Source of the DNA: Tubulanus polymorphus
Lineage: Eukaryota; Animalia; Nemertea
DNA length: 64,000 bases
NCBI RefSeq assembly: GCF_964204645.1
Contig: NC_134030.1
Span: 541,355 to 605,354, forward strand
Direction: 5' to 3'
In this document: piece by piece, positions 24,250 through 51,600 of the stretch
Layout of the letters: every line of letters begins with the position of its first letter
Position numbering within the stretch: position 1 is the stretch's first letter
Program-made: the position numbers and the translations under genes
Notes under the pieces: model-generated
Told to the model about the DNA's origin: nothing
Databases searched by the model: none
The model's input: the letters and a program-made list of their open reading frames with translations, nothing else

Positions 24250-25120
24250 CCATTGATGAAACACTCTGAGTCCGTGTTGTAAAGATAATACAAAATCCCT
24301 GCACACTAAGAATAAAAAGAGTCTGAAATGTTTCCTTGAGCTAGTGTAGTTTATTCAACGTTTCAACTATATCCTAATAGTCATCTTCAGGAATACTGTA
24401 TTCCTTGAGCTAGTGTAGTTTATTCAACGTTTCGACTATATCCTAATAGTCATCTTCAGGAATACTGTATTCCTTGAGCTAGTGTAGTTTATTCAACGTT
24501 TCGACTATATCCTAATAGTCATCTTCAGGAATACTGTATTCCTTGAGCTAGTGTAGTTTATTCAACGTTTCGACTTTATCCTAATAGTCATCTTCAGGAA
24601 TACTGATATTGTCCTCATTATAACCATTGATGAAACACTCTGAGTCCGTGTTGTAAAGATAATATAAAATCCCTGCACACTTAGAATATAAAGAGTCTGA
24701 AATGTTTGCTTGAGCTAGTGTAGTTTATTCAACGTTTCCACTATATCCTAATAGTCATCTTCAGGAATACTGATGTTGTCCTCAATATAACCATTGATGA
24801 AACACTTCAGGAATACTGTATTCCTTGAGCTAGTGTAGTTTATTCAACGTTTCGACTTTATCCTAATAGTCATCTTCAGGAATACTGTATTCCTTGAGCT
24901 AGTGTAGTTTATTCAACGTTTCGACTATATCCTAATAGTCATCTTCAGGAATACTGATGTTGTCCTCATTATAACCATTGATGAAACACTCTGAGTCCGT
25001 GTTGTAAAGATAATACAAAATCCCTGCACACTAAGAATAAAAAGAGTTTGAAATGTTTTCTTGAACTAGTGTAGTTTATTCAACGTTTAGACTTTATATC
25101 CTTATAATAGTCACTTTCAT
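24250..25120 (-). mobile_element. Hammerhead-containing tandem array (family A), mixed 167-bp and 69-bp monomers, ~8 cores
   Basis: Core spacing is 69 bp (24390, 24459, 24528, 24597) and 167 bp (24597 to 24764). Confidence 0.8.
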
Positions 25121-26116
25121 TAGAAACTCTACGAAACATTTTCTTTTTTATTCTTAATTAGCAGATTCTATATCATTTAGTATTTTTAATTTAATTTAAT
25201 ATTTTTCATGAAATTTCCATTTTTTTAGTAACAGCATATTATTAGACGTATATTTTTGAAAATGGAATTCCATTCCCATTTCTTAGAACCCGTCAATTCA
25301 TCACGTTATTCACGATCCTTGCGCAAACATTATTATTTTTTTCCCAAAAAGGAACTTCGCAAAATACAGGAAATTTTTATTTTTTCTAATAGATATTGCG
25401 GTCATCCTAGTTAGATTCGTGGAGCGCGTGGTTTCTCGGAACGACTGTCTGTCTCACGTCGGCGCGCGCGTCAGATAATGACAATAATTACCTCTCACAA
25501 TCTAAAATATCTCAAATCGCGCGTTAAACTCGACAGTCATTTTTTCTATCTATTTAAACGATTCGATTGTCGTGGATCAATAGAAATCTAATTCCGGGAA
25601 TATGAATGCGTATAAGTACCAAACGTCACCTGCCAGGGACCACTCGTCGAGAATTAATGAGTTGTTTTGAATCATCGCTTCCGCGTTTTAAGTATTATAA
25701 GGGTGGATTTATAAAACACGTGTTCGAGTGTGAGTCAGAGAGAGAGAGAGAGAGAGGGGGCTTCATAGACCTCCATCTCTGAACTCAGTTTAACTTCCTG
25801 GTCAGTTTATTCCTGGTCGACATCGATATATACACAATACCGATATAAAGAAAACACCAAAAAAAAAACGCCAGAATATTTTCGTTCATATTTTGAAATA
25901 TCGTTACAGCCGTTAAAACGCGCACCTGCACGATAATTAACTATTCTAATCGATGATAATTTATCCAGTAATTATGCATGAACACGATTACGGAATTTAA
26001 TTTTCTCTTCTCGTCTCAGTTAAGAATGAAAGAGCGCTCGTGTGATGAGGAAGTTTATACGTACCACTTCAGAACTATATCCAGCAGCCAACAGCGAATC
26101 ATGAAAAAAAAGTTCG

Positions 26117-26617
26117 TCATATCATCATTTGGATAAGTTGTCACATTACGGAAGTCATTTCTATTTTTGAGTCTCAATTTGTATTTCTAATTCAATTCAC
26201 TAAGTGTAATCATGGACTAGAGTCCATGGTGTAATTCATAATTTGTATCTAAGTCGTCACATTACTGAAGTCATCTCTATTTTTGAGTCTCAATTTGTAT
26301 TTCTAATTCAATTTACTTAGTGTAAGTCATCATTTGGATAAGTCGTCACATTCCTGAAGTCATCTCTATTTTTGAGTCTCAATTTGTTTTTCTAATTCTA
26401 TTTACTAAGTGTAAGTCATCATTTGGATAAGTCATCACATTACTGAAGTCATCTCTATTTTTGAGTCTCAATTTGTTTTTCTAATTCTATTTACTAAGTG
26501 TAAGTCATCATTTGGATAAGTCGTCACATTACTGAAGTCATCTCTATCTTTGAGTCTCAATTTGTTTTTCTAATTCTATTTACTAAGTGTATATGTCATC
26601 TTTTGGATAAGTCGTCA
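26117..26617. repeat. 89-bp satellite, array 2 (~5 copies)
   Basis: Same unit as 22781; interrupted at 26211 by a short palindrome. Confidence 0.93.
26211..26228. mobile_element. 18-bp P-element-like remnant/footprint with 7-bp TSD
   Basis: gtgtaat-CATGGACTAGAGTCCATG-gtgtaat. Confidence 0.65.
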
Positions 26618-48396: not shown

Positions 48397-48590
48397 TAAT
48401 CACATTACTGAAGTCATCTCTATTTTTGACGCCCGAGAATGTGTTATCTAGTTAAACTTACTGAGTGTAAGTCATTAGTTGGGAAAGAAGTCACATCACT
48501 GAAGTCATCTTTATTCCAAGAATAGCCTCAAGAATTTGTATTTCATAGTCACATTTTTCAAGTGCAAGTCGTCATCTGGAAAAGTCATCA
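48397..48590. repeat. Diverged 89-bp satellite relic (~2 copies)
   Basis: cacattactgaagtcatctctatttttga ... gtgtaagtcat. Confidence 0.7.
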
Positions 48591-50204
48591 ACATGAAATT
48601 AGAGTATTTGACAGGTTAGGTTTCGAGGGAAGAGGGAGAGAGAAGGGAGAGAGAGAGAAAGAGAGAGAAGGGAGAAGGGACAGTGAGAGAAGTGACAGAG
48701 AGAGAGAGAGAGAGGAAGAGCCGGCTGCCTTGAGTGAATAGGACCAACAGATTTTTATATACGCGTATGTTCCGGGAGAGCACTGGCGTCGCGTCGAATC
48801 GGGCAGAAAGACACTCTCGTCTGCTCAATGCGTCCCACAACGCTATAATTAATGGGTAGACGTTGTGGGGTAGTTTGTTCGGGCCTACTGACAAGGAACC
48901 GTGATTCATTGTACCTTTCGCGTTTAATAGACTCGCTACAGATTAACAATTCGCAGTTGGCGACGGGGGCGGTACCGGCCACGACATATTGGGTTCCATT
49001 CCGACTTACTCTGAATCGGCACTTTTATAAGGCTTCTCTCTCTCTCTCTCTCTCTCGCCCTGCATTGGGACACATGATGGTGATGGTGGTGACGGGTTGA
49101 AATCACTACGAACCAGGAAGATGAGAATGACAAAACAAAATAACAGAAAATGCGGGCAACTACACTGGTCCTATCTATATATTATATTCATATATATCAA
49201 GCATGACGTACACATATATGGAGAGAAAATTATATGAAATTATTACTGATAGAAAAATTAGCCTAATAATTGAATCGAAATATTGCGCGATGGTTTAGCA
49301 CCGAAACTTCACCGACCGTTCGCTACATTTGGCGCTGAAATACAAAACACCGCAAATGTGCGCATTCATCGCGTTGTTATATTATGTTTATTCGTTTTTC
49401 TGTTTGTGTGGTGGAAATATTATGTCCGTTTTCATCTTTTGTAAACTTCAATCGTAGCCTAAATATATGTATAACTTACCAGACATAAGCAACAACTACC
49501 ATATCAAAGAAATGAAATTTATTTATTGAGATTTAGAATCAAAATCGACGTTGCGAATTTCAGAGAGATGCGAAGAAATAAATAAGGGGTATATTGATGG
49601 AGGAGAAGCCATTTGAATAGATCTTTTATTTATAATTTTTTTTCTATAATTCACACTCAGTTCTTTTAAATAATAATTCTATAATTCGGGCGTCGATAAA
49701 CTATCTGTGTAAACTCGCGCGAGAGCGCGGTTTATAACACATTGTTGTAGAATGTGACGTAGCGTTTTAACTAAATCTAAGGAGTAAAATATGAAACCCG
49801 GCAATTATCATCAATTATCTTACAGCGGATTCGGTTGCCTTGGAGAATCTATCTTACATCAATAAGGCCACCTCGCGTACGCATATACGACGGATATTTC
49901 AAAAGAGAACCCTGGGTTCATTGCGCACCAGAACTACTAAAATTACTTATTGATTGAAAGAACTTAGATATTATATATATATATATATCCATATATACAT
50001 ATATTGAATGTTTATGGAACAGAGTGTAATATGTAGTATTTTGAGTAGAGATGAATACTGTGAAACTTGAATCATTTCTAACTTTATTCATGAGGATTAA
50101 TTGAATTCTATCCTATGAGGATGTGAAATTAATGGTGTCAATAAGCACTGTCTGAGTCTGCGTTGTGTTGCTCCAACAAAAAGGAAAAAAATGATTCAAG
50201 CCTG

Positions 50205-51600
50205 ATTTATTTCCTTGAGCTAATATTCTATTCGAGGTTTCGACTGTATCCTGAAATAGTCATAATCATCTTCAGGAATACATAATTTAGATTAATGGAA
50301 TACTTAAAAGTTAAATTCCTGTAGATGACTATTAGGATAAAGTCGAAACGTTAAATAAACTACACTAGCTCAAGGAATACAGTATTCCTGAAGATGACTA
50401 TTAGGATAAAGTCGAAACGTTAAATAAACTACACTAGCTCAAGGAATACAGTATTCCTGAAGATGACTATTAGGATAAAGTCGAAACGTTAAATAAACTA
50501 CACTAGCTCAAGGAATACAGTATTCCTGAAGATGACTATTAGGATATAGTCGAAACGTTGAATAAACTACACTAGCTCAAGGAATACAGTATTCCTGAAG
50601 ATGACTATTAGGATATAGTCGAAACGTTGAATAAACTACACTAGCTCAAGGAATACAGTATTCCTGAAGATGACTATTAGGATAAAGTCGAAACGTTAAA
50701 TAAACTACACTAGCTCAAGGAATACAGTATTCCTGAAGATGACTATTAGGATATAGTCGAAACGTTGAATAAACTACATTAGCTCAAGGAATACAGTATT
50801 CCTGAAGATGACTATTAGGATATAGTCGAAACGTTGAATAAACTACACTAGCTCAAGGAATACAGTATTCCTGAAGATGACTATTAGGATATAGTCGAAA
50901 CGTTGAATAAACTACACTAGCTCAAGGAATACAGTATTCCTGAAGATGACTGCTAGGATATAGTTGAAACGTTGAATAAACTACACTAGCTCAAGGAATA
51001 CAGTATTCCTGAAGATGACTATTAGGATATAGTCGAAACGTTGAATAAACTACACTAGCTCAAGGAATACAGTATTCCTGAAGATGACTATTAGGATAAA
51101 GTCGAAACGTTGAATAAACTACACTAGCTCAAGGAATACAGTATTCCTGAAGATGACTATTAGGATAAAGTCGAAACGTTGAATAAACTACACTAGCTCA
51201 AGGAATACAGCATTCCGGAAAATGACTATTAGGATAAAGTCGAAACGTTGAATAAACTACACTAGCTCAAGGAATACAGTATTCCTGAAGATGACTATTA
51301 GGATAAAGTCGAAACGTTGAATAAACTACACTAGCTCAAGGAATACAGTATTCCTGAAGATGACTATTAGGATAAAGTCGAAACGTTGAATAAACTACAC
51401 TAGCTCAAGGAATACAGTATTCCTGAAGATGACTATTAGGATAAAGTCGAAACGTTGAATAAACTACACTAGCTCAAGGAATACAGTATTCCTGAAGATG
51501 ACTATTAGGATAAAGTCGAAACGTTGAATAAACTACACTAGCTCAAGGAAACATTTCAGACTCGTTTTATCAATTTTTAGTGTGCAGGGATTTTATATAT
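50205..51600 (+). mobile_element. Family-A hammerhead array (18 x 69-bp), sense to the Dlx pre-mRNA, with a 5' inverted fragment
   Basis: Cores from 50319/50388 to 51492 in 69-bp steps; inverted degenerate copy at 50205-50283. Confidence 0.85.

Follow-up and report, generated by a model that had tools for sequence, protein, structure and literature searches.

A 69-bp hammerhead-bearing tandem repeat of the nemertean Tubulanus polymorphus is probably a tandemly amplified slice of a Penelope-like element

The minimal hammerhead ribozymes (min-HHRs) of Penelope-like elements (PLEs) from metazoans combine a helix I of 4–5 bp with a long helix II and lack helix III, and four traits outside the search descriptor recur among them, namely compensatory changes in families, a base left unpaired between A9 and G10.1, conservation of the G10.1-C11.1 pair and a palindromic 15.2-16.2 [Cervera & De la Pena 2014, PMC4209133]. 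Metazoan retrozymes of the type without long terminal repeats (non-LTR) have monomers of 150–450 bp [Cervera & de la Pena 2020, PMC7229834], and a recent preprint, which ties retrozymes to the terminal regions of PLEs, gives them consensus lengths of 51–972 bp [Li, Clavereau & Pollet, bioRxiv 2026, 10.64898/2026.07.22.740005]. Here we describe a 69-bp tandem repeat in a 64,000-nucleotide stretch of the T. polymorphus genome (contig NC_134030.1, positions 541,355 to 605,354 of the forward strand, assembly GCF_964204645.1), referred to below as the window. The repeat is arranged head to tail, and every unit contains a type I hammerhead. The unit is likely a tandemly amplified slice of a young, probably active PLE, with arrays that were probably seeded by the PLE machinery and a hammerhead that looks relaxed.

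Tandem Repeats Finder places 69-bp arrays at window positions 24332–24610, 24805–24956, 30244–30586, 38036–38947, 47015–47495 and 50315–51550, with 95–98% matches. A one-unit BLAST query of the window returned 55 matches, corresponding to ~53 copies of the unit and including a singleton at 41350–41408, which agrees with the roughly 50 copies in five arrays plus a singleton, in both orientations, of a preliminary description made from the sequence of the window. The ribozyme-sense strand is the plus strand for the copies at 30, 38 and 50 kb and the minus strand for those at 24, 41 and 47 kb. A covariance model built in this analysis finds 56 confident hammerhead instances in the window, and the GC content of the repeat is 0.30–0.36. 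In the genome as a whole (~268 Mb, 77 contigs, with the window lying ~0.54–0.61 Mb into contig C6), the junction specific to the 69-mer together with the start of the motif occurs 883 times, versus 0 in the control, well above any chance expectation. One array of the family (G000:C3:26097361-26098129) has a period of 67 bp instead of 69 bp. A 107-bp non-repeat block recurs at the borders of the 69-bp arrays, and a 60-bp hammerhead unit followed by this block makes up a 167-bp monomer, which also forms arrays of its own elsewhere in the genome, mainly on contig C8. The 69-bp arrays are not a free-standing satellite, since each lies within a composite with the 107-bp block or a tail. Of the 'dispersed 69-bp satellite' first described, the tandem repeat thus stands and the free-standing nature does not: a block or tail accompanies each array, and inverted 5' copies accompany three.

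The hammerhead reads, in the register and with the architecture first described, as UAUUC/GAAUA for helix I, then CUGAAGA, one extra U, a stem II of 6 bp capped by a 6-nt loop, GAAA, ACGU and U17, with AAUAAA overlapping. The core (CUGAAGA ... GAAA-CG-U-U) matches C3 U4 G5 A6 N7 G8 A9 ... G12 A13 A14, A15.1, U16.1 and H17, and the full motif is intact in 168 of 192 69-mers at 14 loci. The last three of the four recurrent min-HHR traits are present in the unit, with G10.1-C11.1 corresponding to G13/C30 and the palindromic 15.2-16.2 to C35/G36, without a loop 3; the remaining trait, compensatory change, is addressed by the comparison of families below. Two features originally entered as caveats fall away. 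The extra U (U12 of the unit), which is invariant in the 192 copies and is U in 21 of 22 aligned sequences across families and A in one, is a hallmark of the PLE min-HHR class, and the GUU triplet, regarded as weak, is common among the PLE hammerhead families of the genome, as is GUC.

The autonomous element sharing this motif, for which a search had been proposed, has been found. GIY-YIG matches lie in many open frames of 817–841 amino acids, and at locus L069 a 2,856-bp head-to-tail tandem contains an intact 833-amino-acid frame with RVT_1 and GIY-YIG domains; an inverted 5'-truncated copy is also present. Every L069 copy carries a hammerhead identical to that of the 69-mer family (family A). 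At both L069 and L067 the identical motif follows the stop codon by ~318 nt and precedes the next ATG by 106 nt, and the terminal partial copy of the PLE tandem stops at the next-copy ATG, 106–110 nt past the predicted cleavage site. Cleavage of a tandem PLE transcript at the hammerhead would release unit-length RNA. More than 50 PLE copies share 97–100% protein identity, many being intact, and the hammerhead occurs 293 times in the genome in its PLE context. The PLE is young and probably active. Another PLE family carries a different hammerhead family, with a spacing of 2,857 bp.

The 167-bp monomer is collinear with a stretch of this PLE. It matches the PLE exactly over its first 47 nt, where the hammerhead lies, and at 85% identity over ~99 nt; another collinear seed is found close to the PLE end. 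Hence, the 167-bp repeat is this PLE after loss of its open reading frame (ORF) and most of its 3' untranslated region (UTR), leaving the hammerhead and the 5' UTR, and the 69-mer is a further internal deletion of the 167-mer, retaining the hammerhead and ~26 nt. The earlier proposal of a non-autonomous, ribozyme-bearing retroelement derivative is borne out by this homology to an autonomous PLE in the same genome.

The same hammerhead architecture is widespread outside the 69-mer family. A whole-genome pattern that left out this family by requiring N7 not to be A gave 1,565 matches, versus 1 in the reversed control, and the matches fall into several sequence families with different, compensated stems; in all, at least five families of the genome have this architecture. 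Covariation was assessed in an alignment of 22 distinct sequences, comprising the genome families, the PLE copy and two metagenomic PLE relatives. The core and G10.1-C11.1 were set by the patterns and are excluded as evidence (the pair is fixed for the other families and is an observation only in the 69-mer, PLE and metagenomic cases); the inner stem II pairs, helix I and the invariant AG of loop II were free to vary. Pairing is found in 87.9% of the cells of the alignment, versus 25–52% in slid registers, double changes occur in 11 of 12 pairs, and the observed covariation score was reached by 0 of 500 shuffles. Helix II is 97% paired with five of six pairs doubly changed, and all five pairs of helix I are doubly changed. 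The C3-G8 tertiary pair is CG in 20 sequences and UA in two, both of them the metagenomic relatives, and such U3-A8 core covariation has been reported for PLE hammerheads [PMC4209133]. These relatives, from marine metagenomes and of ~51% amino acid identity, have the hammerhead ~270 nt after the ORF, once per tandem unit (L070 at 2738 and 5554, L072 at 626 and 3520), with a U3-A8 core, a bulged U, a compensated stem II and a loop II starting with UAG; in a third metagenomic relative, L073, no hammerhead passed the filter. Since compensated stems occur in several families, the min-HHR hallmarks are present and PLE relatives share the motif, it is, by sequence, structure and descent, a genuine member of the PLE min-HHR class with putative catalysis, and the initial assignment to the minimal type I, Penelope-type hammerheads is upheld by the covariation and the class hallmarks. 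All 22 aligned sequences have a loop II starting with YAG, a sign that a conserved contact may have gone unrecognised.

A second min-HHR family is also represented in the window. Its motif at 24005–24054 (minus strand) has CUGACGA, a bulged U, the stem GAUCUC/GAGAUC and a GUC triplet, and is located at the apex of a ~220-bp palindrome (23921–24141), the arms of which lengthen helix I to ~50 bp. This palindromic element is highly repeated in the genome. At 21256–21305 (plus strand) the family has a further, decayed copy, in which the palindrome is UA and not CG and which scores 31.8 bits with the model built in this analysis.

How the arrays are bordered was surveyed for 16 arrays at 14 loci. 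Those in the window, termed A1 to A5, are composed as follows.

24250–24331, minus strand: 3' tail of A1, 82 nt of the 107-bp block, ending ~104 nt past the predicted cleavage site, the same distance as the end of the autonomous PLE
24332–24601, minus strand: array A1, made up of four 69-bp units, with truncation of the 3'-most one at unit position 63
24602–24768, minus strand: one 167-bp monomer (60-bp hammerhead unit plus 107-bp block), homologous to the PLE 5' UTR
24769–25120, minus strand: remainder of the A1 complex, with a partial block, two 69-bp units (24815–24952), a full block and a diverged 5'-most unit (~25060–25120)
30169–30247, plus strand: partial block at the 5' edge of A2
30248–30586, plus strand: array A2, five 69-bp units
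30587–30770, plus strand: block, diverged unit (30691–30725) and short tail following A2
37971–38035, no single strand: 5' border of A3, an inverted partial unit (37971–37996) plus a diverged partial unit in direct orientation, its core mutated but its stem II compensated
38036–38947, plus strand: array A3, 13.2 units
38948–38975, plus strand: tail of A3, a 28-nt piece of the block, directly next to a (GATT)n microsatellite
41350–41412, minus strand: diverged singleton unit (86% identity), then the start of a tail
46967–47014, minus strand: tail of A4, 48 nt of the block
47015–47497, minus strand: array A4, seven units
47513–47562, plus strand: diverged copy bordering A4 on its 5' side in inverted orientation, with arms 89–90% complementary
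50211–50290, minus strand: inverted diverged copy at the 5' border of A5, matched as a hairpin by microRNA (miRNA)-precursor models
50315–51550, plus strand: array A5, 18 units
51551–51599, plus strand: tail of A5, 49 nt recognisable

About 13 of the 16 arrays end in a PLE-like tail on the ribozyme-sense 3' side, and the longest tails reach ~104–114 nt past the predicted cleavage site, to the point at which the PLE stops. A3, A4 and A5 each have a partial copy, inverted and diverged, at the 5' border. A tail together with an inverted 5'-truncated copy is a published signature of PLE insertion, and non-autonomous derivatives of PLEs give multicopy head-to-tail insertions [Craig et al. 2021, PMC8557442]. 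We therefore propose that the PLE reverse transcriptase and endonuclease, using RNAs that ended in a PLE-like tail, seeded the arrays at dispersed sites, which would explain both the 3' tail and the inverted 5'-truncated copy at the 5' end, and that local unequal exchange may then have altered the number of units, an effect most visible near chromosome ends. A5 is flanked by a possible target-site duplication of 11 bp, ~45 nt beyond the tail and ~116 nt upstream of the first unit. The A3 tail and the microsatellite next to it lie within window positions 38948–39029; microsatellite targets are reportedly favoured by PLEs. At another locus, L010, the predicted cleavage site is exactly where the array (last unit ~1704–1753) stops (GAAACGUC followed by unrelated sequence), a single case of the end that reverse transcription of a cleaved RNA would give.

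Five observations weigh against reading the arrays as a PLE slice seeded by PLE machinery. No Rfam hammerhead model matched in the window at the gathering score, nor at E <= 10 in scans of two 1.5-kb array segments, so that the Rfam check that had been proposed gave nothing; the only Rfam matches to the repeat are hairpin-like ones to miRNA-precursor models at the inverted junctions, and the miss is probably due to min-HHRs lacking helix III. No sequencing run recorded as RNA contains the repeat, and the only possible RNA run (X7) gave nothing; X1 and X2 behave as DNA, since the unique flanks are covered in both, and X5 gave repeat fragments only. Target-site duplications are suggestive at best, with well-placed 10–11 bp matches at two arrays and overall lengths not above those of mismatched-locus controls. 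Several tails, at 28–49 nt, fall short of the full PLE-like tail, and simple priming from one set 3' end of the RNA leaves this unexplained. Also, units are 97–100% identical between loci while array edges and tails are more diverged, for which recent spread, homing into old arrays and exchange between loci are candidate explanations.

The 69-nt unit could instead be an active ultra-small retrozyme, in which neighbouring units achieve dimeric self-cleavage and the released RNAs form 69-nt circles that serve as rolling-circle templates for the PLE reverse transcriptase. This would fit the motif being intact in most units, the apparently active autonomous PLE with the same motif, the L010 array that stops exactly at the predicted cleavage site, and the operational criteria of the 2026 preprint, under which the arrays would score as active. 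It would also fit the head-to-tail supply of ACGU partners: U17 extends the palindrome to AACGUU, and in a cofold the palindromes of two domains pair over 6 bp, including A14 and the cleavage-site base. However, the A26/T26 mosaic differs in every array, with runs of a single variant, which is not expected from copying a single monomeric circle, and the PLE-like tail is absent from individual 69-mers and carried only at the 3' end of the array. A26, a stem II mismatch, is found in 20 of the 39 full window units, with T26 and a perfect 6-bp stem II in the other 19, and in 53% of 69-mers, 1 of 25 167-mers and none of the PLE copies, which confirms that many copies have the variant first noted as shortening stem II. 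In predicted folds the hammerhead is the minimum-energy structure of the isolated T26 domain (-8.4 kcal/mol), whereas in the A26 form it reaches -3.3 kcal/mol against a minimum of -5.2 kcal/mol. In addition, the deletion that produced the 69-mer created a junction palindrome, present only in this form, that in multimers is predicted to pair over 8 bp, sequester C3 and U4 and out-compete helix I.

Core sites of the 192 units are no more conserved than the linker, both deviating from the reference at 0.7%. Equal mutability of core and linker had been named in advance among the grounds for refuting the ribozyme reading and is indeed what is seen, but we do not take it as a refutation, because copies of a young repeat decay neutrally after insertion and the power is low; the informative comparison is that between families. 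The self-pairing of the monomer RNAs (z = -0.01 for the 167-nt form, -2.3 for the 69-nt T26 form and -0.7 for the 69-nt A26 form) indicates that RNAs released by the predicted cleavage would not be notably structured and would lack the high self-pairing of retrozymes. PLE min-HHRs cleave poorly in vitro, even as dimers [PMC4209133], one of nine predicted retrozyme dimers was cleaved when tested [10.64898/2026.07.22.740005], and the runs described above offer no RNA record of the repeat. An active 69-nt retrozyme is hence unlikely. Self-cleavage of the 69-mer is possible but unsupported, and the signs from predicted folds and variation point to relaxed constraint: the hammerhead would have been inherited and looks relaxed rather than optimised, and any cleavage would be weak and dimeric, through the ACGU palindromes of neighbouring units.

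A purely DNA-level origin, in which unequal crossing-over amplified one PLE fragment that spread through segmental duplication or as extrachromosomal circular DNA, with an inert hammerhead and without the repeat ever having been reverse-transcribed, is less probable still. It draws on the clustering of 69-mer junction copies within a few Mb of contig ends, with PLE copies spread along the chromosomes, on edge units being more diverged than inner ones and variants running in blocks within arrays, as is classic for satellites, and on the equal variation of core and linker. Against this, there are at least 15 separate loci on many chromosomes, most with the same PLE-like tail at the same end, the full-length tail stops where the PLE stops, several arrays have the inverted 5' copy typical of PLE integration, and two have candidate target-site duplications. 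That the hammerhead is a chance look-alike in the hairpin-rich repeat of a DNA transposon (Helitron/Helentron or miniature inverted-repeat transposable element, MITE) is suggested by the lack of Rfam hammerhead matches and by a palindrome-rich unit with recurring non-repeat flanks. A Helitron/Helentron- or MITE-borne satellite is ruled out, as the recurring flanks are PLE 5' UTR and not transposon termini. The look-alike is moreover refuted, as far as sequence evidence goes, by the covariation that both helices and the 3-8 tertiary pair show between independent families and species, by the presence of all four non-descriptor min-HHR hallmarks, and by the identical motif at the canonical position in an element with reverse transcriptase and GIY-YIG domains, and we give it almost no credence.

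The window is very rich in tandem repeats, consistent with its location near a contig end. Two other dispersed tandem families, with an 89–91 bp unit and a 20-bp unit, are found at 22781–23315, 26229–26617, 54725–55626 and 61922–62241, and also at 1282–1550, 28312–28681, 35223–35534 and 45998–46291, and large single arrays have units of 109 bp (10035–11488) and 55 bp (33024–34439). Two near-identical transfer RNA (tRNA) genes, at 16392–16463 (minus strand, 67.7 bits) and 61643–61714 (plus strand, 65.3 bits), both have CUG in the anticodon loop and are probably tRNA-Gln genes.

Set beside the PLE min-HHRs described in 2014 [PMC4209133], the motif has the same CUGANGA...GAAA core, unpaired base between A9 and G10.1, G10.1-C11.1 pair, 6-bp helix II and 4–5 bp helix I, as well as the palindromic 15.2-16.2 without loop 3 that implies action as a dimer, the PLE-terminal location, close opposite-strand pairs and, in relatives of the PLE, the U3-A8 core variant. 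It differs in having been excised with ~26 nt and amplified as 69-bp head-to-tail arrays, in its GUU triplet with the palindrome extended to AACGUU, and in a YAG-initial loop II shared by all genome families. With non-LTR retrozymes [PMC7229834] it shares low-GC head-to-tail repeats, a type I hammerhead in each unit and co-existing autonomous PLEs. At 167 bp, the longer monomer lies at the bottom of their 150–450 bp range, whereas the 69-bp form is outside it and far shorter. Published invertebrate retrozymes have canonical hammerheads with loop-loop contacts and abundant, highly self-paired circular RNAs of 170–400 nt; in contrast, the repeat described here has a minimal PLE-type motif and predicted monomer RNAs that are not notably structured. 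The retrozymes of the 2026 preprint are likewise tandem hammerhead repeats homologous to PLE terminal regions, with multimers enriched near chromosome ends, but they are mainly from vertebrates and their link to PLEs was inferred from phylogeny, whereas here the link is direct, through an identical hammerhead and 47 nt and a stepwise series of 2,856, 167 and 69 bp. As that preprint lists consensus lengths down to 51 bp, the suggestion that the 69-mer would be one of the smallest such monomers is not supported. Non-autonomous PLE derivatives described by Craig et al. [PMC8557442] also show similarity at one end, partial tandems, an inverted 5'-truncated copy and a short terminal extension; the Chlamys and Naiad elements mostly lack canonical hammerheads.

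PLE min-HHRs (2014), metazoan retrozymes (2020) and the derivation of retrozymes from PLE termini (the 2026 preprint) have thus already been described, and the contribution made here is a clean new example with a readable deletion series and an apparently active partner. For annotation, the arrays, which the Rfam models miss entirely, should be labelled PLE-derived repeats and not new non-coding RNA genes. That each unit of a satellite bears a hammerhead motif is not enough to indicate a working ribozyme array, and the shortest derivative points to relaxed constraint; an active 69-nt retrozyme, if true, would be among the smallest self-processing mobile RNAs known, and the series from 2,856 to 167 to 69 bp would then show how far a ribozyme-bearing retroelement can shrink. 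T. polymorphus provides an unusually clean within-genome case for animal retrozyme-like repeats being PLEs stripped of their ORF.

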